From the IMG/VR virus record IMGVR_UViG_3300048008_000449, positions 62,001 through 126,000 of that record: 64,000 nt of DNA; one strand, given 5' to 3'. The notes beneath the pieces were generated by a model. The model saw only the letters and a program-made list of their open reading frames with translations. It was not told the origin of the DNA and searched no databases. How positions within the stretch are numbered: position 1 is the stretch's first letter; each line of letters starts with the position of its first letter. Positions 3,210-35,949 of this stretch are shown here, piece by piece. Both the position numbers and the translations under genes were made by a program.

Positions 3210-3401
3210 TTACTTATCCATTAGTTTAACTATCCTAGGTTTGAATAGTTTTTGATCGCCTTTGGTTGTTTTAAGAACAGGCTGATTGTTATCATCTGTT
3301 GAAAATCCTGTTACTGTTGCTCTACGATTTTTAAATTTACCAACCATTATTTCATCGCCGATCTCAATGTTTGGAAGTTGTAATACATCTTTTATTTTCA
3401 T
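3210..3401 (-). CDS. Small hypothetical protein (MKIKDVL...)
   Basis: Start re-called at 3401, giving an ATGA overlap with the stop of 3398..4027. Confidence 0.6.
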   Translation of the reverse strand: MKIKDVLQLPNIEIGDEIMVGKFKNRRATVTGFSTDDNNQPVLKTTKGDQKLFKPRIVKLMDK

Positions 3402-4027
3402 AACATTTCCTTTATATTGCCATCGTGTCCTTCTGTTGGAAGCCACTTTGACGATGGCATTAATGGATCATTTTCATCCCATCTAGAACTTAGTCTTAAA
3501 ACAAGATTAATTCCATTATCATCAGCTAACTTTTTAGCATCATCAATTTGATGTTCATTAAAGCTAAAAGGTATCCATTGCCAATAAATATCTTTTCCTT
3601 GTTTTACTCCTAAACACATAGCATCGAATGATTGTTGCCAGTTTATACCAACTCTATAATTATGAGCAGTATCAGCTAGTCCATCAACACCGAACCATAT
3701 CTTATTGTATTTAGTTTCGTAGCAATCATATAATTCTTGCCACCAACTTTGTTTCTTGCCTGATCCATTTGTATGTAGATCCCAACTATAGTTTTCTTCT
3801 TCTAGCCATGTTATAAATTCTATTAATCTAGGGTGATATATTGGATCACCTAAGTTACCACACATATTAACTATACGTGGCTTAGTTTTAATTACTAATT
3901 CCTTTGCATGATCTATATTAAGATCATCAATTGTATATCTGCCTTTGTATATTGTTCTGGGACATTTTGGGCATTCAAGTAAACAACGCTTAGTCATTTC
4001 TAAATGTAATAGCATGCCACTATTCAT
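3398..4027 (-). CDS. Radical SAM protein (core domain only)
   Basis: CLLECPKC (CxxxCxxC), GNLGDP, HTNGS, FGVDG. Confidence 0.9.
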   Translation of the reverse strand: MNSGMLLHLEMTKRCLLECPKCPRTIYKGRYTIDDLNIDHAKELVIKTKPRIVNMCGNLGDPIYHPRLIEFITWLEEENYSWDLHTNGSGKKQSWWQELYDCYETKYNKIWFGVDGLADTAHNYRVGINWQQSFDAMCLGVKQGKDIYWQWIPFSFNEHQIDDAKKLADDNGINLVLRLSSRWDENDPLMPSSKWLPTEGHDGNIKEML

Positions 4028-4328
4028 TTACATATACCCAGTTTTCTGTTGGTTTGTTTGTGGAAGTGAAAGGCTTACTACATTGTTTCCAACATGCATT
4101 CTGTGCCCATGTTTTAGGATCTTTTTTTAAGTTTTCTACGTATTTCTTTAATTCGTTATTAAGAATGTTTTCAATTGAATTATTATTTAGGTTCCAGTTT
4201 GGATTTTTGTTTATTGGACCTGCTTCGCCTAGCCAACAACATGGCCTTACTTGACTGCCTGATGTAACATACAGTCGTTGTGCATTTTCGCATTTTGGAT
4301 ACAGTTTGTCCATGTTTTCATTATTCAA
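4020..4328 (-). CDS. Stand-alone SPASM/twitch-like Fe-S domain protein
   Basis: C-x13-VRPCC...CWKQC; overlaps the radical SAM gene. Confidence 0.7.
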   Translation of the reverse strand: MNNENMDKLYPKCENAQRLYVTSGSQVRPCCWLGEAGPINKNPNWNLNNNSIENILNNELKKYVENLKKDPKTWAQNACWKQCSKPFTSTNKPTENWVYVNE

Positions 4329-4489
4329 AAACGGCTCATATCAAAACCAGCATCAGTATCTAATGATTCTCTGGAAGTTCCAAAATATCTAGCCCAATAC
4401 TTTAAACGTTCATTTGTACTTAAACGTTTAGCTTCGTGTTCTTTAATCTTTTCTATATAATGAGCAAACTGCTCAGGAGTCATTAACAT
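4325..4489 (-). CDS. Small hypothetical protein, 54 aa (MLMTPEQFAHYIEK...), not in the ORF track
   Basis: TAATG overlap with the upstream stop; fills the gap exactly. Confidence 0.6.
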   Translation of the reverse strand: MLMTPEQFAHYIEKIKEHEAKRLSTNERLKYWARYFGTSRESLDTDAGFDMSRF

Positions 4490-5013
4490 TACTTAATCCT
4501 CTGTAGTAGTTCCTTAAATCCATTCACTGTGTGAATATATTCTTCAATGTCTTTTTGTTTATCTTCATCTGAATCTAGATATAGCATTATTACTTTTTTT
4601 GCTTCTAGTGGTGATACGTTTATTACTATATCATTATAAAACTTAACTGGAAAGGAAGCATTATCCTTTCTTGCTGATATATTGTATAATACTTTCATAA
4701 CTGATGATTGTTTAATTGCTGCTTCCATTAATTTGGATTGTGATTCAGTTAAACCTAAATTATACAGATTATGTGGTGTGCTATTCTTACGTGCTTTTTT
4801 GTGAAGTTCTGCTGGTTTACCTTTGCCAAAAAACTTAGCTGCTTCTATCTCAGTTTGACCCGGTTTAACATCTACAGTAGTATTAACACCTGGAACTATT
4901 ACACCGTCTTCCTTAACGCAATTGTTTACACGCTTGCCTTTGTTTTTTCCTGTGCCGGGCTTAGTTCCTTTTTTCTTATAACCATCCCAACAATCAATTT
5001 CATTTATTTTCAT
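4489..5013 (-). CDS. Modular protein with capsid-targeting-like N-terminus and a CWDGY...NCV mini-domain
   Basis: MKINEI start; SD AAGGA; TAAATA at 5032-5037. Confidence 0.65.
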   Translation of the reverse strand: MKINEIDCWDGYKKKGTKPGTGKNKGKRVNNCVKEDGVIVPGVNTTVDVKPGQTEIEAAKFFGKGKPAELHKKARKNSTPHNLYNLGLTESQSKLMEAAIKQSSVMKVLYNISARKDNASFPVKFYNDIVINVSPLEAKKVIMLYLDSDEDKQKDIEEYIHTVNGFKELLQRIK

Positions 5014-5026: not shown

Positions 5027-6238
5027 TTAACTATTTATCGATTTAAACAGTTCAGTAAACGTTTTTTGCCAATTGGTTTTTCTTAAAACGTCTAATCTTT
5101 CTAAAAAATCTGCACATTCATATATATTACCTTCATATTCCATGGTCATTTTAAGGTAATTTATTAAGTGTTGTATTTTACTTCTATGCTCTGAATTTTC
5201 ATATATATTTATTAAATCTAGCTTTGATTGCTTAGATAATTGCTTGCAGTCAAGCATATGTGGTGTTGATAATATTCTTATATTAATATGGTACTTTTTA
5301 AAATGATCTAACAATTTTAAAAATGTAAATGCATTAAGTACTTGCCATGTAATGCTTATTTCTATTTGTGTATTAGGTAATAGTGTTTCAATACGTTTTA
5401 TGTTTTCATCTAATTTATACCATTTACTAGGAAACCGTATATAATCATTTTGTTCACCAAAATCATCTATACTTACTCTAAGCATTAATTTTTTAAAATG
5501 TTTCCATTGTTCAATTGCACGTTGATGTACATTTGTAATGTTTGTATCGTATTCTAGTGTAACATGTTTACTTACACCCTTGTCTATTAGCTTTTGTAAG
5601 AACACATAATGATTCTCAATAAGCATAGGTTCGCCGCCAACTAGATATACATGTTGTAATTGATCTATATTATTTTCTAATTGTTCCCAAAAATGTTCGC
5701 TTTTCCACCAATCATAATTAGTATCATTCTTATCATTGATTTCTACTTTTGTATTACTATCATAAAAATGATCAGTATTATATACACTTGCCCAATCTTT
5801 GTACCACATGCTACTACTTTGTGGCCCACACATTACACATTTTAAATTACATAGATTACCAAAACGCAAATCCCAATATATAGGCATTTGTGTTGTACTA
5901 CCATCTGCATCTGTTAGTTTAACTGCTTTATCATAATCAATTATATCCTTGTACATACTGTTTGTAAATGTACGTCTACTTTTACCTCCGTTAGCTTCTT
6001 TTGTCCAACAAGTAGAACATTCAGCAGGCTTTTCACCTGCTAAGAATTGTTTACGAATATTACGAGTAAATTCGCTATTGTGTATTTCTTCTATTGAGTG
6101 AGTTTTAAAATTATGTCCAGTTTGTCCGCCGTTGCCAGAATCATGGTTACTCATTAAACAACATACTCTGCTTGCTCCGTTTGTTTTACTGGCTGAGTGT
6201 ATCCAAGGAATGGAACAAAAACTATTCTTCTGCATCAC
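5027..6238 (-). CDS. Radical SAM protein with N-terminal SPASM/twitch domain
   Basis: CSIPW...VCC...CSTC, then CNLKCVMC, GGEP, SIDD. Confidence 0.9.
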   Translation of the reverse strand: MMQKNSFCSIPWIHSASKTNGASRVCCLMSNHDSGNGGQTGHNFKTHSIEEIHNSEFTRNIRKQFLAGEKPAECSTCWTKEANGGKSRRTFTNSMYKDIIDYDKAVKLTDADGSTTQMPIYWDLRFGNLCNLKCVMCGPQSSSMWYKDWASVYNTDHFYDSNTKVEINDKNDTNYDWWKSEHFWEQLENNIDQLQHVYLVGGEPMLIENHYVFLQKLIDKGVSKHVTLEYDTNITNVHQRAIEQWKHFKKLMLRVSIDDFGEQNDYIRFPSKWYKLDENIKRIETLLPNTQIEISITWQVLNAFTFLKLLDHFKKYHINIRILSTPHMLDCKQLSKQSKLDLINIYENSEHRSKIQHLINYLKMTMEYEGNIYECADFLERLDVLRKTNWQKTFTELFKSINS

Positions 6239-7400
6239 CGTAGATCCAATCAGCTAGTTCCGGATCAAAACTTTCCATTGTTACTTTACCGTAGCTATCG
6301 TAATATTCAACAAATTGTTTTACTGTTGCTTTACGTTTTGGATCATTGTTAAAAGGTCTTCGCATTTCATTTATAACATGATCAACGCCTTCTAGTTTTA
6401 TTTTGTTGTCTTCGAAGAATTTTAATGATTCAGCTTTGAATCTATCTGGAATGTTTTCCATAAGAACTTCAGTCTTATTAATAACTGGTCTTATTTGTAC
6501 TTTAGCATCTGGGTAATGTTCCCATAAGTACTTTATTAGTTTTGGAATATGTCTTACACTTAAACTGTTAGCTGTAATATCCCATATACGCAATTTAAAT
6601 TCTTTGTAATATTGGTCCATGACTGCAATCTTTTCTTCCCAAACATCTTCTTGTCTTGTCCAGTCATTTGCTTTACCCCAACCATCAATACTAAATCTTA
6701 AATTTACATTTTCAACAGTTTTAAATTTTTCTAAATCTTTTTGTCTTAGTAGCCTAGTACCATTTGTGTTAATAACAAAACGTGCATCAGGAGCAAGTGA
6801 TCCTAAACGTTGTACTGTTGTTGGAAAATTTTTAAGATAAAAAGGTTCACCACCAGCTAAGTATACATGTTTTAAATCTTTATCAACACTACTAATAATA
6901 TTATCCCATGCTTGTGGATCGTCACTCCAATCATAATTGCTTTTGTGATATTTTTTTGCTTCTTTTTCTAAACGTCCTTCTTTCCAATTAAAATGTTTAG
7001 CCATTGTTTTATGGTTTTGTAATATCTTGTTACTGTTACCAGCAAAACACATAACACATGCTAAGTTACATACGTTACCTAATCTCAAATCAAGTGCATG
7101 TATTTTTTCATCTTGGAAAGGTACACCTTTATTAATCATACCTAGTGCTTTTTGTCTAAAACTACGTACACCTTCACGTTCTGGATCATAACATTTAAAA
7201 CAACCCATAGGTTCACCACCGTCTGCAATTTCTGCTCTAACGCTATGCATCTCTGGACTATTCCAAATCTCACTTAGTTTATAATCTTTAATGTGATATT
7301 GATCTAGTTTGTTTTTTAAGTTTTTACAACATAATGCTACATAACCGTCATTATCAACGAACGTAAAATTATTTGTATATATACAATATTTGTCTGTCAT
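6222..7400 (-). CDS. Radical SAM protein with N-terminal SPASM/twitch domain
   Basis: C...LCC...CFKC, then CNLACVMC, GGEP, TNG, SIDG. Confidence 0.9.
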   Translation of the reverse strand: MTDKYCIYTNNFTFVDNDGYVALCCKNLKNKLDQYHIKDYKLSEIWNSPEMHSVRAEIADGGEPMGCFKCYDPEREGVRSFRQKALGMINKGVPFQDEKIHALDLRLGNVCNLACVMCFAGNSNKILQNHKTMAKHFNWKEGRLEKEAKKYHKSNYDWSDDPQAWDNIISSVDKDLKHVYLAGGEPFYLKNFPTTVQRLGSLAPDARFVINTNGTRLLRQKDLEKFKTVENVNLRFSIDGWGKANDWTRQEDVWEEKIAVMDQYYKEFKLRIWDITANSLSVRHIPKLIKYLWEHYPDAKVQIRPVINKTEVLMENIPDRFKAESLKFFEDNKIKLEGVDHVINEMRRPFNNDPKRKATVKQFVEYYDSYGKVTMESFDPELADWIYGDAEE

Positions 7401-7456: not shown

Positions 7457-7720
7457 TTAGTCTGTGATTACAGCGTCAAAATGATCTAAGTAAAATTGCT
7501 TTAGTACATGATGATCAATATCTTTGTGAGCATTTCCAATATTCATTGTATACCATCCTAGTGCATGTCTAAACACACCGCCATTTTCTTTTTCTTTACG
7601 CAATAATATTTTATGTAATTTTTCTGCTACACGTCTGTATTTGTCTCTGCTAACAACTGGTTTAATTCTACGAACCATATTAGTCCATGGACTAGCTTCT
7701 GTTACTTCGTTAATTAACAT
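7457..7720 (-). CDS. Hypothetical protein with capsid-targeting-like N-terminus (MLINEVTE)
   Basis: 87-aa ORF overlapping the upstream stop. Confidence 0.65.
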   Translation of the reverse strand: MLINEVTEASPWTNMVRRIKPVVSRDKYRRVAEKLHKILLRKEKENGGVFRHALGWYTMNIGNAHKDIDHHVLKQFYLDHFDAVITD

Positions 7721-10700
7721 CGTCTAATTCCTCCGGTACACCAATATCTTTAACTACATTATTATCTTTAACTGCCTGTTTAACATATTGTGCTGCTTCT
7801 TTAGTCCAGTTCTTATTCATTGCTGTAAGTAGAGATTCAAAACTATTTAAATCTTTTCCACTATCTAGTTTTAATACTTTTGCAATTTCATCAGCTTGTT
7901 TCCAAGGACCGTCAATTGTTTCGTTTTTATTTTTCTTAGTATATCCTGTACCTGCTTTATTTGGAACAGGTGTACGCTTAACACGTAACAATCCTTCAGT
8001 TGGACTCCACATATAACGTAATTCTTCCATAGCACGACCGTCTTCTAGTTTAGCATCACTTTGTTGTCTATCAAGTACTGCTGCCATTGAAGCTATCATT
8101 ATATTACGGAATACACCTTTGTATTTTGATTCTTCTTCACTTGGGCTATGGTAATAAGTTTTCATCCAACCTGGATCGCCTGGCATGAAATCTACTTGTA
8201 CAAATCCTGTACGTGGTCTTCCATCTGTGTGTTCTTTATTAAAGTTTTGTATTTCAACTTTTGTCATTATAACACTTGATTTTGCAATATCTTTAATTAG
8301 TGGATTCTTTTTAAGTTTCTCAACAAATGCTGGTAATTCTTCTGGGGGTAAGTTTAATGCAACATCTATGTCGCCACTAAATTGTCTTTTTCCTACACTA
8401 CCTAATGTAAAGTTATTTAAATCTATACCTAATGATTTTTCTAACATTTCTAACGTAGGCTTTATTTCATCAATGTGTATAGCACCAACACCTGGCATTG
8501 CTCCGCCTTCGTTAAGTGTAAAGTACTTGTTAATTAAGTTTGTGTTTTCAAATGTACCATATTTTTGTGTCCATTTGTATAAGTTTGTTTTATATTTGTC
8601 ACTTACTCCAAAATCCCAAGCACGTCTTGGTCTAGTTGGTGTTTGTCCTGGTCTAGTTCTAATATTTGGTTTTGGTGCAGGAACTGGTCCTGGAGCAGGA
8701 GCAGGAGCTGGTTCTGGTGCCGGGAATGGTTCAGGAATTGGTTCTGGCGAAGGAACTGGATCTGGTGAAGGAACTGGTTCTGGTACTACGCTAGGCACTT
8801 CACTTGGAAGTGGATCTGGATCAGTTGGCTGTTCTGGTTTAGCTGGAGCCTCAGGATCTATATCTGGATCAGTAGTTGGTTCTGGTGCAACTGGGCTATC
8901 AGGCTCAGGTGTTAAATCTGGTTGTGTTGGAGATACAGGATCTATTTCCGGTGCATTGCCTGGAGCAGGATCTGTCTGTGGTTCACTTGGAAGTGGATCT
9001 GGATCAGTTGGCTGTTCTGGTTTAGCTGGAGCCTCAGGATCTATTTCTGGATCTGTAGTTGGCTCAGGTGCTTCTGGACTATCAGGATCACTTGGAGCAT
9101 CTGGTTGCTCAGGAGCATCTGGTTTTACATCAGGAGCTTCACCCGGTGCTGGATCTGTCTGTGGTTCACTTGGAAGTGGATCTGGATCAGTTGGCTGTTC
9201 TGGTTTTGCTGGAGCATCTGGATCTACTTCTGGATCAGTAGTTGGTTCCGGTGCTTCTGGATTTTCTGGTTCTTTACCTGGCTGTGGTTGTTCAGGTGAA
9301 AACGGTGTTACTTTTGGTTTCTTCTCAGGTTCTACTGGCTCTTCTTCTGGCCCTTTAGGTAATGGTTCTTGATCAGGTGCTTCTGGCTTTGCAGGTGCAT
9401 CTGGATCTATATCTGGATCTGTTGTAGGATCAGGAACTTCTGGATTCTCTGGTTCTTTACCTGGCTGTGGTTGTTCTGGAGCATCAGGTTCTATATCTGG
9501 GCCTGGCTCTAATGGTTCACTTGGAAGTGGTTCCTGTTCAGGTGCTCCTGGTCTAGCAGGCGGAAAAGGAATAACTTTAGGTCTAGTAATAGGAATTTCT
9601 ACAGGAGGTTTCTCTGGATCTATTTCTGGAGTCTTTGGTTGTTTTGGTGTATCTGGAACAATTACAGGCTTTGGAGGTAACGGATCATTAGCTGGTAATG
9701 GGTCACCATCTGGCTGTGGTACTCTCTGTGGTAATGCATCATATACTGGTGGAGCATCATTTGCTGGTAATGGAAACATTCCTATATCTTCTGGTGCTTC
9801 AGGAGATAACAATTGTTCTGGTGATGTTGTCATTACTTCTGGTGCTATTTCGTTTGCCGCACGTTGTAATGCTGGATCAACCTTACCAATTAAATCATCT
9901 AATGCTTTTTGAGTTTTTGCTTTACGCATTTTTTCAGCTAAATCATCAGCTGCTTTTTTAAGACCAGGATCAATCACTCCTTCGAGTGATTTAACAATCT
10001 CATCGTTTCTGTATCCTTGAGCAGTTTGATAATCAAAATCGTCCTTGTATCCATCTGGATCAGTTTTATATTTCTTTGTTGTTTTATACCAATCTATAAT
10101 ATCTTGCATAGCTTGGGTTGGATCTGATTTAATATAATCTTGTTGTATCTTCCATTGCAATAATTGCTCATCTTTTAGAGTACCATCACCTAATGTACTA
10201 GGAGTGATTATATTTAAAACTACACCGCCAAATATTCTAGGAAGTGCTTTCAATCCTAACTTAGATAAATTTTTCCAATCTAATTTTGGAGGCTTAACAT
10301 TGTCGTTTGCTGCAATTAACTGTTTCATCATTGCTGGATTTTTTATAAAATAGTTACTAACACTTATTCTAATTCGAGGATTATTTTTAAATTTGTCTGG
10401 AAATAGTTGTGTAACTTTACCAACTGATTGATTGGCTGATGATTTTGATACTCCATATTTTTGTTGAAAGTCTGCAGGATTCATGTTATTAAATAAGTCA
10501 ACTGCTGGCATCCCTTCCATAAGAGCCTCAATTGATTCCATGATCATTTTACTTTGTTTATTATCGCTATAAAAATTAAATGAGTTTACTTGAAATTCTT
10601 TATTTGGAGTTTTAAAGTTATTCTTACGCATAACTGTTTTTGCAATAAGATCTAATTCATTGTTGTTATTATCCCAACGTAAAACAAAAGGAATATTAAC

Positions 10701-10967
10701 ATCTGTTGCTAAATCTTTAAGAACCGCTTCAGAATCTGGACCAAGGCGAGCAATTTGCTTGCCCCAATATTTGTATTCTTGTTTAAATAAACGAGTCAGC
10801 TCACTTGCCGTAATCTGTTTTACATTACGTTCATCGTTTAATCTATCTAAAAAATGTCTTGTAAATTCAACATCAATACCAATTTTCGCAAATAATCTAT
10901 CTGCGAATACCTCAATTTGGTCCAGTTCCTGTTGCGATAATTTTCTGTCTACTTCAAATATTCTCAT
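7710..10967 (-). CDS. 1085-aa multidomain protein: N-terminal FTRHFLDR domain, Pro/Glu/Asp repeat linker, C-terminal Pol-beta-type nucleotidyltransferase
   Basis: MRIFEV start; LGSVGK...SGDIDV (GS, DxD) and a third Asp in QVDF. Confidence 0.75.
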   Translation of the reverse strand: MRIFEVDRKLSQQELDQIEVFADRLFAKIGIDVEFTRHFLDRLNDERNVKQITASELTRLFKQEYKYWGKQIARLGPDSEAVLKDLATDVNIPFVLRWDNNNNELDLIAKTVMRKNNFKTPNKEFQVNSFNFYSDNKQSKMIMESIEALMEGMPAVDLFNNMNPADFQQKYGVSKSSANQSVGKVTQLFPDKFKNNPRIRISVSNYFIKNPAMMKQLIAANDNVKPPKLDWKNLSKLGLKALPRIFGGVVLNIITPSTLGDGTLKDEQLLQWKIQQDYIKSDPTQAMQDIIDWYKTTKKYKTDPDGYKDDFDYQTAQGYRNDEIVKSLEGVIDPGLKKAADDLAEKMRKAKTQKALDDLIGKVDPALQRAANEIAPEVMTTSPEQLLSPEAPEDIGMFPLPANDAPPVYDALPQRVPQPDGDPLPANDPLPPKPVIVPDTPKQPKTPEIDPEKPPVEIPITRPKVIPFPPARPGAPEQEPLPSEPLEPGPDIEPDAPEQPQPGKEPENPEVPDPTTDPDIDPDAPAKPEAPDQEPLPKGPEEEPVEPEKKPKVTPFSPEQPQPGKEPENPEAPEPTTDPEVDPDAPAKPEQPTDPDPLPSEPQTDPAPGEAPDVKPDAPEQPDAPSDPDSPEAPEPTTDPEIDPEAPAKPEQPTDPDPLPSEPQTDPAPGNAPEIDPVSPTQPDLTPEPDSPVAPEPTTDPDIDPEAPAKPEQPTDPDPLPSEVPSVVPEPVPSPDPVPSPEPIPEPFPAPEPAPAPAPGPVPAPKPNIRTRPGQTPTRPRRAWDFGVSDKYKTNLYKWTQKYGTFENTNLINKYFTLNEGGAMPGVGAIHIDEIKPTLEMLEKSLGIDLNNFTLGSVGKRQFSGDIDVALNLPPEELPAFVEKLKKNPLIKDIAKSSVIMTKVEIQNFNKEHTDGRPRTGFVQVDFMPGDPGWMKTYYHSPSEEESKYKGVFRNIMIASMAAVLDRQQSDAKLEDGRAMEELRYMWSPTEGLLRVKRTPVPNKAGTGYTKKNKNETIDGPWKQADEIAKVLKLDSGKDLNSFESLLTAMNKNWTKEAAQYVKQAVKDNNVVKDIGVPEELDDVN
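8800..9540. repeat. Imperfect tandem repeat, 183-nt (61-aa) period, about 4 units, Pro-rich
   Basis: tcagttggctgttctgg recurs at 8821, 9004 and 9187; tctgg(t/c)tttgc at 9199 and 9382. Confidence 0.9.
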
Positions 10968-10972
10968 ACAAC

Positions 10973-16027: not shown

Positions 16028-16300
16028 TTACAATATAAACAATTGTATAAAAGCCCAACCATTCATTAGTGTAAACCAACAACATAGTACTATAGCACTA
16101 CTACCACGTCTATATGTGCTAAAGACTGCTAACATACTACCAATTAAGTATAAAGGTATAAAAATTGTTGTAGCTGGGTCTAAAATAGTAAAACTAAGTA
16201 TAGCACTTGCTATAATAAGAACTGTAGTTTCAACTATTTCTGCATAAAATGCTGTTCTATCTGTTTTATAACTTTTTTTAAAAAACTCAATTATTTTCAT
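16028..16300 (-). CDS. Small membrane protein
   Basis: Three hydrophobic segments. Confidence 0.6.
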   Translation of the reverse strand: MKIIEFFKKSYKTDRTAFYAEIVETTVLIIASAILSFTILDPATTIFIPLYLIGSMLAVFSTYRRGSSAIVLCCWFTLMNGWAFIQLFIL

Positions 16301-17315: not shown

Positions 17316-17348
17316 ACGTGCCTCTGGTTGTATTAATAATATGCTTAT

Positions 17349-17377
17349 ATTGTAGCAAGATATCTTATATTTGTCAA
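17349..17377 (-). promoter_or_regulatory. Sigma70 promoter of uvsE with palindrome AAGATATCTT in the spacer
   Basis: TTGACA-N17-TACAAT. Confidence 0.7.
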
Positions 17378-17386
17378 CCGAAATTA

Positions 17387-25633: not shown

Positions 25634-27887
25634 TAATAAGTAACTTGTCTTTTTGCCAATCAAGCTCCAATGTAAACTCGCCTTCATTATTAAGTAGATA
25701 TTTTGCTAATGGTAATTTTACTGATTCGTTGATTACTCGTTGTAGTGGTCTTGCACCCATTGTAGGATCGTACCCTTTATCTTCTAGCATGGCTAATAAT
25801 CCTGGTCCCCACTGTAATACAATATTTCTACCTTCAACATATGATTCTAATTCTCCTAAGAACTTAATAACAATACGTTTCATATCATTTTGCTCTAGTG
25901 CGTTAAATTTAACAATTCCATCTAATCTATTTCTAAACTCTGGAGCAAAGTAATTGTTTACTGCATCATCAACTGCTTTTGCATTAAATGTTTCTTCGTT
26001 GAATCCAATTGTAGCAATTGCCGCATCTTTTGCACCTAGGTTACTAGTCATAATAATAATTGCATTTTTAGCACTTACTACTTTACCTGTACTGCTCGTA
26101 AGTGTACCTTCATCAAGTAAACTTAACAATACACTCATTAAGTCAGGGTGTGCTTTTTCTACTTCATCTAATAACAATAAGCAATTTGGATTATCTTCTA
26201 GATGACTTATTAGTAAGCCATCTCCTGCTTTACCATCACCATGTCCTACATAGCCTGGAGGTGATCCAATTAGTTTTGATACTGTATGACGTTCTTGATA
26301 TTCTGCCATATCATAACGTACAAGTTTCATACTCATTGCTTGTGCTAGACGTTTAGCAAGTTCTGTTTTACCAACACCTGTTGGACCCGTAAACAAATAA
26401 CTAGCAACAGGTTTAGTAGGATCTTTTAATCCAGCCATGCTAACTGTAATACTATCTACTACACGATCAACTGCTGGTTGTTGTCCAAATACTGTACTTT
26501 CTAAAAATGTTTTAACTTCTGTATGTTTTGTTACAGTCTGTTTATCTTCTACGTTACCTAAATGTTCTTTTGGTATTCCTGTAAGTCTTGCTACCTCTGC
26601 TCTAATTTCTTCTTCGCCTATAATAGTTAAGCGATCTGCTTCTGGTAAAATTCTATTAAATGCACATGCTCTATCAAGTATATCAAATGCTTTGTCTGGT
26701 AATTTCTTGTTAAAGATATATTGGTCACTTAGTTCAACTGCTAATTCTGCGGCATCTTCAGTAATACTAACATTGTGATAATGTTCATAAGATATCATTG
26801 TACCTCTAACTACTTCTTTTGCCTCAATTATATTAGGCTCATCACATACAACTTTTGTAAACCTACGTGCCAATGCACTTTCTTTTTCAAATACTTTTCT
26901 ATATTCTTCGTCTGTTGTAGCACCAATAACTTTTAGTTTTCCACTACTCAATGCAGGCTTTAACATATTACCAGCATCCATAGTACCATTTGTACTACCT
27001 GCTCCAATAATTTGATGTATCTCATCAATGAATAAAATAATGTTAGGCTCTTTAATTAATGCTTCGCCTAATTGTTTCATACGTTCTTCAAAGTCACCTC
27101 TATATTTGGTACCAGCAACTAACTTAGTCATATCTAATTCCCATACAACCTTGTCTTTAATAATGTCTGGAACGTTACCTTCTACAATAAGTTTTGCTAA
27201 TCCTTGTACAACTGCTGTTTTACCAACACCACTTCCACCTGTTAAAATAGCATTAGATTTTTTCTTACGTGCTACTGTTTGTACTAGGTCTTTTAATTCT
27301 TTTCTACGGCCAATTAAATCATCATAATCTTGGCTTTCTTCATTTAAATTATTACAAAATTGTTTTAATACTTCACGTGGAGTTACTGCTCTCTGACCGC
27401 CTGGTCCTGGCATACCTGCAGCCATACCATCTACTGGTCCAAAGATTTGTTCATCTTTCATTGCGGCTGTATCTTGCATCCAACTCATTACTTTGTTTTT
27501 GTTTAGGCCCAATTGTTCTGCATATTTAGATGACACACTATGTTCTTCACCTAGTATACTCAATACTAAGTCAAGTTGGTTAATTACTTTTTTGCCTTGA
27601 AACAATGCTTGTGTTAACGCACGATTAAATACACGTTCTAACATTTGTGTCTTAGCAGGATTTGGTTCTTCTTTAGTATTTTTTACTAATTCTTTACATT
27701 CTTTTTCTAAGTATTCAATTAATGCAATTTGCAAACTTTCTGCATCTGCATTAATTTCGTAACACATTGCTATTACATGTGGGTCGTCTAGAATCACTGC
27801 GGCTAAGTGTTCTATTGTAACATATTCGTGTTTGAACTTCTTAGCTAAGTTAATTGCTGTTATTACTATTTTTTCAATGTCTGTCAT
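25623..27887 (-). CDS. clpA: ATP-dependent Clp protease ATP-binding subunit ClpA
   Basis: Clp-N (HEYVTIEHL), two AAA+ modules (GVGKT/FIDEIH; GPTGVGKT/LLDEVEKAHP), IGF loop, no ClpB M-domain. Confidence 0.93.
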   Translation of the reverse strand: MTDIEKIVITAINLAKKFKHEYVTIEHLAAVILDDPHVIAMCYEINADAESLQIALIEYLEKECKELVKNTKEEPNPAKTQMLERVFNRALTQALFQGKKVINQLDLVLSILGEEHSVSSKYAEQLGLNKNKVMSWMQDTAAMKDEQIFGPVDGMAAGMPGPGGQRAVTPREVLKQFCNNLNEESQDYDDLIGRRKELKDLVQTVARKKKSNAILTGGSGVGKTAVVQGLAKLIVEGNVPDIIKDKVVWELDMTKLVAGTKYRGDFEERMKQLGEALIKEPNIILFIDEIHQIIGAGSTNGTMDAGNMLKPALSSGKLKVIGATTDEEYRKVFEKESALARRFTKVVCDEPNIIEAKEVVRGTMISYEHYHNVSITEDAAELAVELSDQYIFNKKLPDKAFDILDRACAFNRILPEADRLTIIGEEEIRAEVARLTGIPKEHLGNVEDKQTVTKHTEVKTFLESTVFGQQPAVDRVVDSITVSMAGLKDPTKPVASYLFTGPTGVGKTELAKRLAQAMSMKLVRYDMAEYQERHTVSKLIGSPPGYVGHGDGKAGDGLLISHLEDNPNCLLLLDEVEKAHPDLMSVLLSLLDEGTLTSSTGKVVSAKNAIIIMTSNLGAKDAAIATIGFNEETFNAKAVDDAVNNYFAPEFRNRLDGIVKFNALEQNDMKRIVIKFLGELESYVEGRNIVLQWGPGLLAMLEDKGYDPTMGARPLQRVINESVKLPLAKYLLNNEGEFTLELDWQKDKLLINGK

Positions 27888-28557
27888 CTTTTAGCCTTTT
27901 TATAAAATCGTTAATATTAGATTCAGTTATGTGAGGTATCTTTACACTAATGTTTACTCTTAAACTTCCTCTCTTCTTTGTCTTTCTGTTATACAATCCC
28001 TGACCCTTAACACTAATAATAGTTCCTGTTTCTGTTTCAGGGGGAATATTTAATTCGCAGTAATCACCTAATGGTGTTAATATAACAAATGAATTCCTTT
28101 TCATTACATCTATTATATCTAATGTTTTATACATTATAATATTATTTCCTTGTCTTGTAAAGACTTTATCTGCCAATTCTTTAACATTTATTATGTATTT
28201 TTTGCCTTTATTAACAACATTAAACTTATCGCCTGCTACTGCTCCTGGGGGAATATTTACTTTTATGAATAATTCTTCTTCGTCTTCTACTTCTATATAA
28301 TTATTTATACCTAAAATTTGTTGTTCAATTGATAATCCAATATTAAACATCTTAGTATCAGACACTTTTACAATAGGTACATGTTTCTGCTCAGAAATAG
28401 TATCATATGCTTGACTAATTTCTAACCATTCAGCGATTGTACCGCCTTTGTCTGGATGATTTTTTAATGCTAATTTCTTATAGGCTTGCTTTACTTCTCT
28501 TAGTGAGGCGTTGGGTTCTACTCCTAAAATAAACCAAGGGTTATTGTAAGTCTTCAT
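27874..28557 (-). CDS. DnaJ-class co-chaperone (CbpA-like, no zinc finger)
   Basis: J-domain with HPD and a DnaJ C-terminal domain (KGQGL). Confidence 0.85.
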   Translation of the reverse strand: MKTYNNPWFILGVEPNASLREVKQAYKKLALKNHPDKGGTIAEWLEISQAYDTISEQKHVPIVKVSDTKMFNIGLSIEQQILGINNYIEVEDEEELFIKVNIPPGAVAGDKFNVVNKGKKYIINVKELADKVFTRQGNNIIMYKTLDIIDVMKRNSFVILTPLGDYCELNIPPETETGTIISVKGQGLYNRKTKKRGSLRVNISVKIPHITESNINDFIKRLKDDRH

Positions 28558-30327: not shown

Positions 30328-30472
30328 AATAAATTATTCCTTTGTCTTATACTTATTTATGACAGTTATATCTTAAAGGTCAACCTTGTTATCTACTTAC
30401 ATAATAGCCACACACAATTGTTAAATACATATGAGCAGGCAACATGGGCCTCTTACCCAAATAGGAGTTATA

Positions 30473-31216
30473 ATGGCTAAACGAGCTCGAAAAACAAAAA
30501 AACAACAACATCAACAACATTACAACGATCACAGTAATGTAATTTCAGTAAACGAACATAGACAACGCAAAAAGCACGTAACAATTGTACCACGCAATAT
30601 AGCACAAGAAGATTACTGCGAAATGTTAGATAATAACAAAAAAAATATTGTGTTTGCAATGGGACCAGCAGGTACCGGTAAAACATTACTAGGTGTACTT
30701 GCGGCTATTGATGCTTACAACACAGGCTTATGCGAAAAAATCGTTATTACAAGACCAGCTGTATCAGTTGATGAACAACATGGTTTCCTACCAGGTACAT
30801 TGGTAGAGAAAATGGCACCATGGACAAGACCTATATTCGATGTAATGGAAGAATATTGGTCACCAAAAACCATTGAAAGTATGATTGCAGACAATGTAAT
30901 CGAAATTGCACCACTAGCATACATGCGTGGTAGAACTTTTAAGAATTCTTGGATTATAGCAGACGAAATGCAAAATGCGACACCATCTCAAATGAAGATG
31001 TTATTAACACGTATTGGCGAGAATTCTAAAATTATTGTAACAGGAGACTTAGCACAACACGACCGTGGTTTTGAAGACAACGGTCTTAAAAATTTCGTAA
31101 AACTATTAGAACAAAAAGGTAGTAATATTATCGGCGTAGTTAGTTTTTCTAGACAAGACGTTGAACGACATATTGCTGTTACTGAGGTTCTATCAATTTA
31201 CGGTGACGAAGACTAA
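30473..31216 (+). CDS. phoH: PhoH-family ATPase
   Basis: GPAGTGKT, GFLPG, YMRGRT, DEMQN, TGD; SD AGGAG before MAKR. Confidence 0.95.
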   Translation: MAKRARKTKKQQHQQHYNDHSNVISVNEHRQRKKHVTIVPRNIAQEDYCEMLDNNKKNIVFAMGPAGTGKTLLGVLAAIDAYNTGLCEKIVITRPAVSVDEQHGFLPGTLVEKMAPWTRPIFDVMEEYWSPKTIESMIADNVIEIAPLAYMRGRTFKNSWIIADEMQNATPSQMKMLLTRIGENSKIIVTGDLAQHDRGFEDNGLKNFVKLLEQKGSNIIGVVSFSRQDVERHIAVTEVLSIYGDED

Positions 31217-32703: not shown

Positions 32704-33441
32704 TCAATCGGGAATTTTAATGCCATCAAACAGTATATCAGAATAGGTTGTTACTAGTTCTCTCCAGTTTGGCAATGGCGGGGAATTTATAATATCGCAT
32801 AATCTATAATATTCCATAGGTTTGTGCCTAAAGATTTCTCCAATATCAATTTTGTGTATTGCAATACCTTTGGCTTCAAATTCCATTTTATAATGGATAT
32901 ATTCTTCGTAATGATCTTTAAACTTTAATGGCTGTGCAAGATGAAATGTATCTGGAGCAATTGTTCTTTCATATGGTAAATTATGATCAGTTCCTACACA
33001 TATGGCAAACATATCTGCTAGTTCTTCTTGATCACAATCAAGTACAATATGTGTTGTTACATTAGTATCTTTATTATGTATAATATCAAATCTAGACAAT
33101 GCATAATTTAAGTAATGATATGGATTAAGTCTAAACACAAGTTTTGTAAAATCACCTACTCCTTGTCTTAGTGCCGCTTCAATTTGGTCATCAAATGGAT
33201 GTACTTCATTTATCCACTTATCACCAAATTTATTTTCACAATGAAATGTTTCAGGTCTCCAACTTCTACCTTGATGTCCTATCATATCTGTACCAGTAGG
33301 ATTTTCTTTTCTCATATCCATGTCAGGTACTTGTGCAAATCCTTCATGTCTTTGAATTAACCAAGAGATAAATTCACCTGGTAATCCTGAAGGATGTATT
33401 ATTGAAAATGCTTCTGGTTTTGGTCTTTCTAAAATAGGCAT
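32704..33441 (-). CDS. Hypothetical protein
   Basis: 245 aa, overlaps the radical SAM stop. Confidence 0.65.
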   Translation of the reverse strand: MPILERPKPEAFSIIHPSGLPGEFISWLIQRHEGFAQVPDMDMRKENPTGTDMIGHQGRSWRPETFHCENKFGDKWINEVHPFDDQIEAALRQGVGDFTKLVFRLNPYHYLNYALSRFDIIHNKDTNVTTHIVLDCDQEELADMFAICVGTDHNLPYERTIAPDTFHLAQPLKFKDHYEEYIHYKMEFEAKGIAIHKIDIGEIFRHKPMEYYRLCDIINSPPLPNWRELVTTYSDILFDGIKIPD

Positions 33442-34721
33442 GGTTGTTTTGGTCCGTAAATTATTTCTGCTAAATCTGGATTATAATCATACAAGTATAC
33501 ATCTCTAAATTTATCCTGTTCACGTACAAGTTCTTGGAATACAGATAAATGATGTTCTTTTGTATCTAATGCTTTTCTCATATCATTAAGTGTTCTAATA
33601 TTATGTGTGTCTTTATTATGATATCTTAGTTCTGCTTTGTTAATTATATTGTGTGCATGTTTTTTATAAGAATCTGGTAAGTTTCCAGATCTTAAATGTG
33701 CTGGAAATACTACTAGTCTTAAATTACTATCAGCTTTATGATCATATACAAAATCTAAAAAGTCTAGTGTATTATCATAATTAAATATTTGGTAACTAGC
33801 ATTAATTTGAACACCAAACCATTTGTTTTCTTGTGCAAACTTAGATAGCTTACCACATTGTTCTTCCATTTGGCTCCAAGTAAATACACCGTTACTACGC
33901 ATGTATTCAAACATTGGACCAGCGGCATCAATACTAATATCTAATGTAAGTTTTTTTAGTTTATGAAATAGTCCTAATTTTTCTACATTTACTTTTGATC
34001 CATTTGTAGTAATAACCATTTTAATTTTTTCTGGGTATCCGTGTTCTTCAATAAGTTCCATTAACCTATATGGACTATCATCCATAAATGGTTCTCCACC
34101 TGTCATCCAAATACTTCTGATACCTTTTAGTACTGTAGGATTCTTTTCTAAATATGGAATAATACTGTTAAAGTTTTTTGGGTTAGACCATTGAAACTTT
34201 TTATATTCTCTAGGAAACTTACTGTTCATGTGTTTAGCTTCAGGTATTAAACTGTTGCTGTAATTTGGACTACACATTCTACATTTAAAGTTACACACAT
34301 TACTAAAGTTTACAAATAAATGGCTTATGTCATTTCCTACTAACTTTGGAGTACGATATGGTTCAGGGTTGCCTAACTGATCCATCATCTTCTTTCCAAG
34401 CCAATTCATACGTTGACTTTTTTGTCCGTTCTTTTCTCTATTCAAACAGTTGGTACATCCATAAGTATCCCATTTACCGTCAAGCATGTTTTGACGTAAT
34501 GTTTGCATTTCTTTACTGTCGTGGCTCTCGCCCATGTCGTCATCACTCATCATGCAACGACTTACAACGCCTGAAGGATGCCAACTAATAGTATTAAATG
34601 GAACTGGACACCAACTTTTACTGTGTAGGTTTTTCCAGTTATCATCTTCAACTACTTTTGTTACAATATCCTTGGCAGGTATAATAAATTTATCTTTGTT
34701 TATGTCTGTTGGATTATTCAT
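33429..34721 (-). CDS. Radical SAM protein with N-terminal SPASM/twitch domain
   Basis: WCPVPF...RC...CTNC, CNFKCRMC, GGEP, TTNG. Confidence 0.9.
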   Translation of the reverse strand: MNNPTDINKDKFIIPAKDIVTKVVEDDNWKNLHSKSWCPVPFNTISWHPSGVVSRCMMSDDDMGESHDSKEMQTLRQNMLDGKWDTYGCTNCLNREKNGQKSQRMNWLGKKMMDQLGNPEPYRTPKLVGNDISHLFVNFSNVCNFKCRMCSPNYSNSLIPEAKHMNSKFPREYKKFQWSNPKNFNSIIPYLEKNPTVLKGIRSIWMTGGEPFMDDSPYRLMELIEEHGYPEKIKMVITTNGSKVNVEKLGLFHKLKKLTLDISIDAAGPMFEYMRSNGVFTWSQMEEQCGKLSKFAQENKWFGVQINASYQIFNYDNTLDFLDFVYDHKADSNLRLVVFPAHLRSGNLPDSYKKHAHNIINKAELRYHNKDTHNIRTLNDMRKALDTKEHHLSVFQELVREQDKFRDVYLYDYNPDLAEIIYGPKQPCLF

Positions 34722-35949
34722 TGTATATAAAGTTACCTAAAATGCTATGATAATCATGCATTGTTTTATTCCTATATTTATCTTGTGCTTTTGTGAAGGC
34801 TTTAAACTTGTCTATCATATCTTGATTTGCTTGTGGTGCTTGTAAGTTTTTAAGTACGTCATCAAAAGTTCTTTGAAATCTTGGATCATTAACTATCTTA
34901 TAGTCTTTAATTTTTTCATATTCCTTCATACGTATATCTGTTGGTAATACATTTAGTCTAAGGTGTTCAGGAAAAATTAACATCCTAGTATTATTTAGTG
35001 CACCTGCATCTACACACAATTCATTAAATTCTGTTACTGTATCAAAGTTGTATGCTTGTATGCTTGCATTGAAACACATGTTAAACCAACCATCATTTTG
35101 CTTCTTAAAATGTTTAAGGTCATCTATTAATGAACGCATTTGTTGCCATGTATATAATCCATCGCTACGCATATATTCAAACATGTTACTAGCCGCATCA
35201 ATACTTAAATCTAATTCAAACCATTTTAAGTTTTCAAACTTTTGTAACTTATCTAAATCTACTTTAGATCCATTTGTAGTAATAACAACATCCATATCCC
35301 AAGATTTATCATATTCGTTTAATATATCCATTAAATCAAAACAGTTGTCGTCCATAAATGGTTCGCCGCCTGTTATCCATATACTTGATAGACTATCTAA
35401 TTTCTCTGGATGTTCTCTTAGGTATGTATTAATAAAATTTCTATTTTTAATAATCTCTGGTTTTACTTTTCTTGCTAAACCAAGTGTATTTAAATGTTTA
35501 TGTTCAGGTATGAGACTATTACTATAACCTGGGCTACACATTCTACATTTAAAATTACAAATATTACTGTAATTTATAAACATATGATTAACAGGGTTTC
35601 CTGTTACTTTTGGATTCATATATCCATCTGTGTTTCTAAAATCGTCTGGATTACGTTGTAACCATTTTTGTCTTTGACTAATGTTGCCTTGTTCTTCTTT
35701 TTTAAGGCAGTTAATACAACCTTCTTTATCCCATACACCATTAAGCATATCAGTTCGAAGTTTTTGCATTTCTTTACTGTCGTAGTCTTCCCCCATCGGT
35801 ACATCGCTCATCATACAACGAGTTAATACACCGGTGGGGTGAAAACTTATAGCGTTGAAAGGTATTGGACACCACGCATTACCGTGGTCGACTTTAGTAT
35901 ACTCTTTGTATATACCTTGTCTTCTTTGTAAATCATTATCATTACTCAC
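34714..35949 (-). CDS. Radical SAM protein with N-terminal SPASM/twitch domain (tandem paralog)
   Basis: WCPIPF...CINC, CNFKCRMC, GGEP; closely similar to its neighbour. Confidence 0.9.
   Translation of the reverse strand: MSNDNDLQRRQGIYKEYTKVDHGNAWCPIPFNAISFHPTGVLTRCMMSDVPMGEDYDSKEMQKLRTDMLNGVWDKEGCINCLKKEEQGNISQRQKWLQRNPDDFRNTDGYMNPKVTGNPVNHMFINYSNICNFKCRMCSPGYSNSLIPEHKHLNTLGLARKVKPEIIKNRNFINTYLREHPEKLDSLSSIWITGGEPFMDDNCFDLMDILNEYDKSWDMDVVITTNGSKVDLDKLQKFENLKWFELDLSIDAASNMFEYMRSDGLYTWQQMRSLIDDLKHFKKQNDGWFNMCFNASIQAYNFDTVTEFNELCVDAGALNNTRMLIFPEHLRLNVLPTDIRMKEYEKIKDYKIVNDPRFQRTFDDVLKNLQAPQANQDMIDKFKAFTKAQDKYRNKTMHDYHSILGNFIYNE

Follow-up and report, generated by a model that had tools for sequence, protein, structure and literature searches.

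An array of radical SAM genes of the N-terminal twitch type in a marine jumbo phage

Introduction

Radical SAM enzymes with a single auxiliary cluster in a twitch domain include the BtrN-type sugar dehydrogenases, BlsE and the dehydrogenase SpeY. Characterised twitch enzymes such as BtrN and BlsE act on carbohydrates, and BtrN acts in aminocyclitol biosynthesis. In these enzymes the single auxiliary cluster is fully Cys-ligated with a C...C...CxxC spacing and the twitch domain is C-terminal. SPASM peptide maturases (anSME, SkfB, CteB, SuiB, PqqE, AlbA) mostly carry a two-cluster SPASM domain. The reversed arrangement, with the twitch domain ahead of the core, is already catalogued as NCBIfam NF033640 (N_Twi_rSAM, twitch domain-containing radical SAM protein), but only as a name of the ‘subfamily’ level without an assigned function. 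No member of this family has a solved structure, and we found no paper on it. Viruses may also encode glycosylation machineries, such as those of chlorovirus PBCV-1 (A64R) and mimivirus (R699 and sugar pathways), which are not known to use radical SAM enzymes.

Here, we analysed a 64,000-nt stretch (the window; positions 62,001 to 126,000 of IMG/VR record IMGVR_UViG_3300048008_000449). An initial annotation of its sequence had described six radical SAM genes, mostly with an N-terminal auxiliary-cluster domain and in tandem pairs, without cofactor-pathway partners nearby. It had proposed an uncharacterised phage modification chemistry acting on virion proteins, glycans or DNA, possibly by heterodimers.

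Results

Six radical SAM genes in the window

The described array is real, and its extent was understated. All six ORFs are radical SAM genes with a CX3CX2C motif (Table 1). Pfam Radical_SAM scores five of them at 27.9–49.2 bits, where g101 is just under the gathering score of 29.5. Four genes pass the curated NF033640 cut-off of 170 bits, all near full length. In g101 and g102 the Pfam SPASM match lies ahead of the CX3CX2C motif. The N-terminal Cys pattern is C-x17-C(C)-x~45-C-x2-C, that is four conserved Cys, so it is a twitch domain rather than a 7-Cys SPASM domain. Its spacing is the same C...C...CxxC as in the BtrN-type enzymes. These four window genes share with NF033640 this domain, CX3CX2C and GGEP. 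The AF2 model of g101 has a pLDDT of 93.

Table 1. Features of the array and its surroundings. Positions are given in the window or, where marked, in the genome; bits refer to NF033640 (cut-off 170) and to Pfam Radical_SAM (gathering score 29.5).
Gene	Position	Strand	Length (aa)	NF033640 bits	Radical_SAM bits	Assignment
g093	1826–2584	-	252			Probable divergent AspH-like 2OG/Fe(II) oxygenase, downstream of pair 1; likely pathway partner
g097	3398–4027	-	209		no Pfam hit	Radical SAM core only, CX3CX2C at 15; no auxiliary domain of its own
g098	4020–4328	-	102			Free-standing twitch domain upstream of g097, 8-nt overlap
g101	5027–6238	-	403	362.8	27.9	N-terminal-twitch radical SAM, pair 1; twitch Cys 8, 26/27, 74, 77; Pfam SPASM 8–78; CX3CX2C 130–137; GGEP 201–204
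g102	6222–7400	-	392	212.3	44.5	N-terminal-twitch radical SAM, upstream member of pair 1; Pfam SPASM 6–70; CX3CX2C at 111; overlaps g101 by 17 nt
g104	7710–10967	-	1085			Just upstream of pair 1; ~380-aa Pro/Asp/Glu/Thr-rich repeat linker; neighbour and speculative substrate
g112	17387–18301	-	304	25.3	41	Short radical SAM core, CX3CX2C at 138; different N-terminal SPASM-like domain, Cys 38, 59, 66, 71, 73
g133	33429–34721	-	430	232.0		N-terminal-twitch radical SAM, downstream member of pair 2
g134	34714–35949	-	411	210.9		N-terminal-twitch radical SAM, upstream member of pair 2; overlaps g133 by 8 nt
g147	40094–41452	+	452			Predicted GT-A glycosyltransferase plus class I methyltransferase domains; likely pathway partner
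g182	60997–62097	-	366			Shorter member of the g147 family
g003	1726–2079 (genome)					Free-standing Pfam SPASM domain
g006	3469–4530 (genome)					Pfam SPASM domain C-terminal
g019	16578–17780 (genome)					Fusion-partner type of g134
g022	19792–20157 (genome)					Free-standing SPASM-like protein
	54405–55709 (genome)					N_Twi gene overlapping the end of the PolB gene
g268	188724–189848 (genome)					Two weak GT2 leads

The remaining two genes are not members of NF033640. The N-domain motif of g112 matches the free-standing g022, and the same domain is C-terminal in distant homologues at the viral loci L109 and L158 (L-numbers denote viral loci). The g097 core gives PHROG 21308 at 5e-15 and is 33% identical to residues ~12–210 of bacterial radical SAM proteins of 338–346 aa. 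Its twitch domain is encoded by g098, which the initial annotation did not list. g098 carries a C-x17-CC...C-x3-C motif and aligns to the C-terminal residues 241–329 of the same bacterial proteins. Together g097 and g098 form a split, order-swapped enzyme, and the same split order is kept in phage L099 and in a Bdellovibrionia MAG. One Pfam SPASM domain is N-terminal in g101 and g102, C-terminal in g006 and free-standing in g003. C-terminal, core-then-twitch split, twitch-then-core split and N-terminal fused versions coexist in this gene set, which makes fission followed by gene-order swap and re-fusion a plausible route to the permuted architecture.

Relation to characterised families

We tested whether the genes cluster with a family of known substrate, the outcome that had been set beforehand as a refutation, and this did not occur. 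Scores against viperin, MoaA, QueE, PqqE, AlbA, SkfB and similar NCBIfam models, including those of the peptide maturases, are far below their cut-offs; the BlsE model scores 15.8 bits against a cut-off of 400. There is no significant sequence match to any solved chain. In structural comparison the core fold is of the SPASM/twitch type. The best matches include the peptide maturases SkfB, anSME, CteB and SuiB (Foldseek E about 1e-5, Z of 10.5–11.8), and BlsE is also among them (Z 11.1).

These matches leave room for an alternative, in which the enzymes modify a peptide or protein by cross-links, epimerisation or another radical modification of a virion or secreted protein, possibly followed by hydroxylation and O-glycosylation. 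The PF05118 Asp/Asn hydroxylase-like genes are consistent partners of the array, AspH-like oxygenases classically act on proteins, and a repeat protein (g104) lies just upstream of pair 1. The sequence composition of g104 explains the GC 0.42 anomaly; it has no Pfam family, PHROG 23027 matches its N-terminus, and its membership in the system is only speculative. However, no RRE/PqqD-like domain or recognisable precursor peptide was found in any Pfam scan of the clusters, there is one auxiliary cluster motif rather than two, and nucleotide-sugar genes lie near the N_Twi genes. We consider this reading unlikely, although virion proteins remain possible as glycoprotein targets.

The array belongs to a larger system shared with Bdellovibrionia

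The window is part of a 204.8-kb fragment of a marine jumbo myovirus, estimated at 56% of the genome, so roughly 350 kb in all. The PolB and tmRNA evidence suggests an alphaproteobacterial host. The fragment holds 13 NF033640 genes and 5 other radical SAM genes, and the window thus shows only a third of the system. The paralogues are old, with 18–33% identity to each other; g102 is only 23% identical to g101. In contrast, g133 and g134 are 45% identical and are a recent tandem duplicate.

Ten of the 13 NF033640 genes have a well-supported one-to-one orthologue in a single ~30-kb cluster of a Bdellovibrionia genome (G003:C1:745–775 kb), with clade support of 0.955–1.0. g101 forms a clade with a Bdellovibrionia MAG gene and viral L105 (support 1.0), and g133 with g134 and a single Bdellovibrionia MAG gene (support 0.955). 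Local order is also shared, namely g004-g007-g008 and g019-g020-g022-g023-g101. The family is common in uncultured viruses (at least 597 hits) and patchy in Bdellovibrionota (26 of 121 genomes); cultured carrier phages are Ralstonia phage RsoM2USA (gp202) and Vibrio K566. Copy number varies from 1 to 8 per viral locus and from 0 to 11 per Bdellovibrionota genome, which resembles surface-glycan islands.

Probable pathway partners and carbohydrate context

The earlier statement that no partners are nearby is incomplete, as probable partners lie in the window (g093, g147 and g182) and a 23-kb operon lies outside it. g093 has no Pfam hit of its own, but Atlas feature hits at 0.98 connect it to viral clusters carrying PF05118, its HxD...H motif aligns with the PF05118 protein g249, and its family co-occurs in 27 of 80 viral loci. 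g147 and g182 belong to one BLAST family of six paralogues with g012, g013, g250 and g251. The model of g251 gives GT-A matches at Z 9.5–9.7 over residues 8–228 and methyltransferase matches at Z 9.4–11.3 over residues 232–475. We note that this assignment rests on an AF2 model with Z only moderately above background. The GT-A domain is structurally closest to viral and protein-glycosylating glycosyltransferases (PBCV-1 A64R, LH3 and COLGALT1), which would also suit a protein target. Family members lie next to the hydroxylase and N_Twi genes in L020, L105 and L106, and homologues of g182 lie inside the Bdellovibrionia MAG cluster. g268 is present in 44 of 80 viral loci. The phage also encodes PF05118 oxygenases and an A-type Fe-S carrier.

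In the isolate Bdellovibrio sp. HCB2-146, the N_Twi genes are interleaved with two UDP-glucose/GDP-mannose dehydrogenases, two NAD epimerase/dehydratases, a DegT/EryC1 aminotransferase fragment, four clear GT2 glycosyltransferases plus a weak GT7C-like match, a GNAT and a polysaccharide lyase. A UDPGP-family pyrophosphorylase lies at the edge of the Bdellovibrionia MAG cluster. UDP-sugar dehydrogenase genes pass the cut-off on 15 of 50 N_Twi-bearing viral contigs, several within 10 kb of the N_Twi genes. However, the phage fragment has no canonical nucleotide-sugar enzyme or glycosyltransferase at Pfam thresholds (PF00535 reaches 13.9 bits only; PF01370, PF01041 and PF03721 are absent), canonical GT2 passed the cut-off on 0 of 50 viral contigs, and by BLAST sugar genes were seen in only 18 of 79 bacterial and 13 of 80 viral loci.

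The amidinotransferase g004 matches HsvA, SxtG and StrB1 at 5e-25 to 2e-16, and PLP-like, SDR-like, nitroreductase-like and GDSL-motif genes lie in the operon. Amidinotransferases also act on simple amines. As g004 is closest to HsvA, SxtG and StrB1, as the twitch enzyme BtrN acts in aminocyclitol biosynthesis, and as both phages and Bdellovibrionota attack bacterial cells, the cluster might instead make a free small molecule, for example a guanidino- or amino-cyclitol-like or polyamine-derived metabolite used against the host or prey. We find this doubtful, since no exporter or resistance gene was seen, glycosyltransferases dominate the cluster of the isolate, and the GT-A family implies transfer onto an acceptor.

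Hypermodification of phage DNA or nucleotides as an anti-restriction measure is the least likely of the readings considered. One N_Twi gene overlaps the end of the PolB gene and lies next to a gene with a weak DNA methylase match, and radical SAM, PLP and amidino chemistry occur in known base hypermodifications. Nevertheless, orthologous clusters sit in bacterial chromosomes among polysaccharide genes, and no ThyA/dCMP-hydroxymethylase homologue was found on the 204 kb of this incomplete genome. DNA as a target has no positive evidence.

Discussion

The interpretation given in the initial annotation is partly supported. The chemistry is indeed uncharacterised, and of the three proposed targets glycans gain support from gene context; the architecture, however, is not new. 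What the NF033640 annotation does not include are the arrays, the phage/Bdellovibrionota orthology, the split forms and the glycan context.

We suggest that the six genes are the in-window part of a dispersed radical SAM system of at least 18 genes, which probably tailors unusual sugars. The analysis establishes the identity of the genes, the domain order of the four NF033640 enzymes, the split and permuted forms and the orthology with the Bdellovibrionia cluster, whereas function, substrate and mechanism are inferred, and everything about the substrate is contextual. From the orthology we infer that the paralogues are distinct steps or specificities of one horizontally mobile pathway, not redundant copies. 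We hold the sugar-tailoring model about as likely as not.

In this model, each enzyme reductively cleaves SAM and uses the 5'-deoxyadenosyl radical to abstract a hydrogen from a sugar, which may be a nucleotide sugar, uronic acid or glycan-bound residue. The twitch domain should bind a second [4Fe-4S] cluster, which would take or pass the electron, as in BtrN-type sugar dehydrogenases.

The keto or radical intermediates would then be aminated (PLP-like g008), amidinated (g004), reduced (SDR-like g018), hydroxylated (AspH-like oxygenases), and transferred and methylated (the GT-A plus methyltransferase family). The proposed aminotransferase step following the radical SAM enzyme is in line with the BtrN-type systems. 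The product would be an unusual, strain-variable sugar decoration, which might be placed on the virion, the envelope of the infected cell or elsewhere. As in the chlorovirus and mimivirus glycosylation machineries, the virus would carry its own sugar-tailoring genes, but here radical SAM genes dominate.

Units probably often act in coupled pairs. Both tandem pairs have overlapping stop and start codons, which suggests translational coupling. Obligate heterodimers of the adjacent genes, which would be compatible with any of the above readings, seem nonetheless unlikely, and a complex prediction gave no answer. g101-type genes occur in 75 of 80 viral loci, but the g102 type in only 5, and it is confined to close relatives of this phage; L099 and the 322-kb contig L009 keep the pair. 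g133 and g134 are duplicates of one type, and long runs of more than two N_Twi genes are common. Natural fusions support pairwise functional coupling in general, but not specifically these neighbouring genes: double-length proteins with two intact CX3CX2C motifs make up 18 of the top 150 cluster representatives, and three further fusions occur in the retrieved loci. Their partners vary (g101+g016 types, g134+g019 types and others). The type of g133 and g134 forms the N-half of fusions of 840–876 aa in L021, L105 and L106, whose C-half is of the g019 type and not of its own neighbour.

Radical SAM genes and their auxiliary domains

The window is bases 62,001-126,000 of an IMG/VR viral contig that comprises 204,772 bp and is estimated at 56% complete. 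In the window GC is about 33% and almost all genes lie on the - strand. The six radical SAM ORFs named in the initial annotation exist and each of them carries the CX3CX2C motif for the SAM-binding [4Fe-4S] cluster, while GGEP or an equivalent is present in the alignments. The Pfam Radical SAM model (PF04055) gives 41-49 bits for four of the ORFs and 27.9 bits, just under the cut-off of 29.5, for g101. It gives no match for g097, which is supported by PHROG 21308 (5e-15) and BLAST instead.

Features of the phage contig discussed in the text
Feature	Frame	Position	Strand	Description
g093	window	1826-2584		divergent AspH-like 2OG oxygenase
g097	window	3398-4027		209-aa radical SAM core with nothing attached
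g098	window	4020-4328		102-aa free-standing twitch domain, overlapping g097 by 8 nt
g101	window	5027-6238		N_Twi gene, first pair
g102	window	6222-7400		N_Twi gene, first pair
g104	window	7710-10967	-	1085-aa protein with a repeat linker
	window	12751-14598	-	CCA-adding / poly(A) polymerase-family enzyme fused to an NT5C-type 5'-nucleotidase domain
g112	window	17387-18301		short radical SAM core with a different N-terminal SPASM-like domain
	window	16287-17315, 18301-18852, 20437-20994, 30431-31216 (+), 35974-36801		UvdE UV endonuclease, RyR-domain protein, class I glutamine amidotransferase / peptidase C26, PhoH, GH19 plus peptidoglycan-binding endolysin
	window	25623-27887 and 27874-28557	-	ClpB/Hsp104-like double AAA+ chaperone and DnaJ-like co-chaperone, side by side
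g133	window	33429-34721		N_Twi gene, second pair
g134	window	34714-35949		N_Twi gene, second pair
tRNAs	window	38978-39226 and 41824-41900	-	four tRNAs
g147	window	40094-41452		member of the family modelled as GT-A plus methyltransferase
tmRNA	window	42633-42979	-	alphaproteobacterial-type permuted tmRNA
g182	window	60997-62097		member of the family modelled as GT-A plus methyltransferase
Operon	genome	1.7-24.6 kb	+	eleven of the 18 radical SAM genes; outside the window
g019	genome	16578-17780		type fused to the g133/g134 type elsewhere
g022	genome	19792-20157		free-standing SPASM-like domain
Fe-S carrier	genome	34658-34969	-	A-type Fe-S cluster carrier, PF01521, 42.6 bits; outside the window
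PolB	genome	51715-54408		family B DNA polymerase
N_Twi paralogue	genome	54405-55709	-	overlaps the end of the PolB gene by 4 nt; outside the window

Four of the ORFs match NCBIfam NF033640, ‘twitch domain-containing radical SAM protein’ (N_Twi_rSAM), near full length and above the curated cut-off of 170 bits, with 362.8 bits for g101, 212.3 for g102, 232.0 for g133 and 210.9 for g134. The two remaining ORFs, g112 (25.3 bits) and g097 (19.7 bits), are not members. Pfam places a SPASM domain at residues 8-78 and 6-70 of g101 and g102, ahead of the radical SAM core. The alignments of all 13 paralogues on the contig and of 53 homologues show the conserved pattern C-x17-C(C)-x~45-C-x2-C, followed by CN(L/F)xCxMC, GGEP and other core motifs. 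C74 and C77 are invariant and C8, C26 and C27 are at least 90% conserved across the 53 aligned sequences. A SPASM domain proper, with two auxiliary clusters, has seven or eight conserved Cys, and only 4-5 Cys lie in the N-domain. Hence, the four conserved Cys make this a domain of the one-cluster ‘twitch’ type, the second cluster being predicted from sequence.

The two other ORFs are organized differently. g112 has five Cys in its first 75 residues and its N-domain has the motif of a different SPASM-like domain. That domain exists free-standing in the same phage as g022, directly associated with the short core g020, and is C-terminal in distant homologues on the viral loci L109 and L158. The pairing of g020 and g022 was considered as QueE/QueD and rejected, as g022 is a SPASM-like Cys domain and QueE scores are low. 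In the case of g097, the ORF just upstream (g098) aligns to the C-terminal residues 241-329 of the same 338-346-aa bacterial proteins whose N-terminal ~200 residues match g097, so the twitch domain has been split off and moved in front of the core. The same split order is kept in a close relative (L099) and in a Bdellovibrionia MAG, so it is not a sequencing error. Elsewhere the split keeps the usual order (g020 then g022; locus L120), and the phage gene g006 keeps a C-terminal SPASM domain.

All six radical SAM genes in the window therefore have their auxiliary Cys domain encoded upstream, five fused and one on a separate ORF. The initial observation, that the auxiliary domain mostly precedes the core, is thus confirmed and extended. 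The coexisting C-terminal, split, order-swapped and N-terminal fused forms make fission followed by order swap and re-fusion a plausible route to the permuted architecture, and offer a natural example of how a metalloenzyme may be circularly permuted.

Scale and distribution of the N_Twi family

The contig carries 13 NF033640 genes over the cut-off and 5 further radical SAM genes. The paralogues are only 18-33% identical to each other, except for g133 and g134, which are 45% identical and represent a recent tandem duplicate. The A-type Fe-S carrier encoded by the phage fits a heavy demand for Fe-S clusters.

Homologues of g101 are plentiful in metagenomes and almost never named, and a 322-kb relative (L009) keeps the pair. 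Against 1.84 billion cluster representatives (clusters at 50% identity) there are 1,494 hits at E up to 1e-30, and the family is concentrated in uncultured viruses. In IMG/VR at least 597 stretches match. The 80 best loci carry 1-8 N_Twi genes and 0-6 other radical SAM genes per ~20 kb, and the 50 of their contigs that were searched whole are all fragments, rated 3-65% complete. However, a blastn search of the first pair against 50,697 phage records found nothing, tblastn found only four weak hits at 23-26% identity, and an exact-protein look-up found no record. Among cultured phages, Ralstonia phage RsoM2USA (gp202) and Vibrio phages K566/K567 carry distant homologues (23% identity, annotated as hypothetical or radical SAM). 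Together with Bdellovibrio sp. HCB2-146 and Halobacteriovorax marinus, these cultured carriers make the function accessible to experiment.

In cellular genomes the nearest relatives are almost all Bdellovibrionota, although that scan used motif patterns biased to close kin. An HMM survey found the family in 26 of 121 sampled Bdellovibrionota genomes, with up to 11 copies, and in none of 14 control genomes. The binning of two records deserves a check. NZDU01000042.1, labelled as a Pacearchaeota MAG, shares many genes with this phage (ClpB-like at 43%, and others at 36-59%), so it looks like a phage contig mis-binned into a MAG. A genome labelled Gammaproteobacteria MED685 MAG has 21 N_Twi-family matches in 1.2 Mb, about a dozen of them over the cut-off.

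The Bdellovibrionia MAG has about 20 copies, most of them in one 30-kb cluster. In a tree, ten of the 13 phage paralogues each pair with one gene of that cluster, in nine clades with support 0.955-1.0 (g133 and g134 share one), and local gene order is shared. Hence, we suggest that these genes are distinct, conserved components of one mobile system, of which the two pairs of the window would be dispersed pieces.

Searches of the literature on NF033640, N-terminal twitch/SPASM domains, phage radical SAM, Bdellovibrio radical SAM and jumbo phages found no description of this family, and the only hits on an N-terminal auxiliary cluster concern the unrelated tetraether synthase. Thus, the genes belong to a family that is already catalogued but functionally blank. 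We found no description of the system-level picture, namely a radical-SAM array of 18 or more genes, the one-to-one orthology between a jumbo phage and Bdellovibrionota, the full series of permuted and split auxiliary domains, and the carbohydrate context.

Genomic context and proposed function

No member of the family is characterised and no solved chain matches by sequence. Searches against solved structures with g101, g112, g093, the PLP-like g008, the GT-A/methyltransferase-like g250, the putative GT2-like g268 and g026 gave nothing useful except generic radical SAM hits. The AF2 model (pLDDT 93) matches only the generic SPASM/twitch-type core of anSME, SkfB, viperin, BlsE and MoaA, at Z of 10.6-11.8. 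The models of nucleotide-acting radical SAM enzymes score at best 46 bits for viperin_w_prok (cut-off 180), 38 for MoaA (284) and 34 for QueE_Clost (260). Those of the RiPP maturases (AlbA, SkfB, PqqE, SCIFF and others) score 15-30 bits against cut-offs of 300-850. No RRE domain appeared in any Pfam scan, and no precursor peptide was identified, though the search was not exhaustive. Modification of a peptide or protein nevertheless remains a possible, if unlikely, alternative. Characterised twitch enzymes such as BtrN and BlsE act on carbohydrates, and their twitch domain is C-terminal. Here the domain order is reversed and the BlsE model scores 15.8 bits against 400, so the resemblance is one of working principle, not membership.

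The function is therefore inferred from context. In the isolate Bdellovibrio sp. HCB2-146 the N_Twi genes are interleaved with two UDP-glucose/GDP-mannose dehydrogenases, two NAD epimerase/dehydratases, a DegT/EryC1 aminotransferase fragment, four clear GT2 glycosyltransferases plus a weak GT7C-like match, a GNAT and a polysaccharide lyase. The cluster of the Bdellovibrionia MAG has a UDPGP-family pyrophosphorylase at its edge. UDP-sugar dehydrogenase genes pass the cut-off on 15 of 50 N_Twi-bearing viral contigs, several of them within 10 kb of the N_Twi genes. However, the BLAST-based count of sugar neighbours is modest.

Pfam and NCBIfam gave no hit for most partner proteins of the phage, but some have assignable folds or motifs. 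An amidinotransferase matches HsvA, SxtG and StrB1 at 5e-25 to 2e-16. A PLP-like enzyme is repeatedly adjacent to the g007-type N_Twi gene, and SDR-like, nitroreductase-like and GDSL-motif proteins are present. There are two Pfam-detected (PF05118) and three divergent AspH-like 2OG oxygenases, of which g093 lies in the window. A six-member family, with g147 and g182 in the window, models as a GT-A glycosyltransferase domain plus a class I methyltransferase domain, the GT-A part being closest to STIV A197, PBCV-1 A64R and LH3 at Z about 9.5. The commonest non-radical-SAM partner in viruses, g268, has two independent weak GT2 leads. We note that these fold assignments have only middling Z-scores. 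Moreover, the phage fragment has no canonical nucleotide-sugar gene or Pfam-recognisable glycosyltransferase: PF00535, PF01370, PF01041 and PF03721, as well as ThyA, flavodoxin and Fer2, were not found at threshold on the 204-kb fragment, and GT2 (PF00535) was over the cut-off on none of 50 viral contigs. Synthesis of a free metabolite also remains open, but we consider it less likely than protein modification. Hypermodification of DNA appears the least likely of these alternatives. The only hint of a link to DNA is the N_Twi paralogue overlapping the end of the PolB gene and preceded by a gene with a weak N6/N4 DNA methylase match, and no ThyA-family gene was found on the incomplete 204-kb fragment.

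Taken together, the best reading is a multi-step sugar or glycan tailoring pathway, in which the radical SAM steps would oxidise, epimerise, decarboxylate or branch sugars, and the partners would aminate, amidinate, hydroxylate, methylate and transfer them. The identity of the genes, their domain architecture and their orthology are established by the analysis, whereas the binding of a second [4Fe-4S] cluster by the N-terminal domain, the activity on sugars and the pathway as a whole are inferred. The interpretation in the initial annotation, an uncharacterised modification chemistry of virion proteins, glycans or DNA by possible heterodimers, is thus supported only in part. A more far-reaching but doubtful possibility is that jumbo phages and predatory Bdellovibrionota share a mobile pathway, in which ten or more distinct radical-SAM steps build a hypermodified sugar or glycan of a kind not yet described. 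In this view, the steps would be carried out by circularly permuted (N-terminal twitch) enzymes, often working as two-active-site pairs, and the split twitch/core genes would be living intermediates of that permutation.

Radical SAM enzymology advances largely by finding families with new chemistry, and this family, with no assigned reaction, occurs at 13 copies on one phage fragment. If it tailors sugars, phages and bacterial predators carry an unexplored glycan chemistry, which would bear on virion or cell-surface recognition, host range and defence evasion.

Probable coupling of N_Twi units

Tandem pairs are the smallest case of longer arrays. Double-length proteins with two complete units are frequent, making up 18 of the top 150 cluster representatives in varied combinations, and the g133/g134 type is fused to the g019 type in the loci L021, L105 and L106. 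This Rosetta-stone evidence supports pairwise coupling of units. However, it does not single out the two neighbouring pairs as obligate heterodimers, since g102-type partners occur only in close relatives, and g133 and g134 are duplicates of one type. A complex prediction for g134 with the g019-type partner, run without controls, returned a score of 0.00 and is no evidence either way.

g104, which lies directly upstream of the first pair, has a ~380-residue Pro/Asp/Glu/Thr-rich repeat linker, which explains the local GC of 0.42 and the reversed GC skew, and a Pol-beta-type nucleotidyltransferase-like motif near the C-terminus. It could be a substrate or be unrelated.

Host and other genes of the phage

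The PolB of the phage is 44-48% identical to those of Atu_ph07, Phosso and GAP32-like jumbo myoviruses and is closest to those of Agrobacterium and Sinorhizobium jumbo phages. The permuted tmRNA (RF01849, 123 bits) encodes the tag peptide ANDNYSPEMALAA. The host is therefore probably a low-GC marine alphaproteobacterium. A Bdellovibrionota host was also considered and judged less likely. The enzyme in which a CCA-adding / poly(A) polymerase-family protein is fused to a 5'-nucleotidase domain is represented by two separate genes in the 322-kb relative L009.
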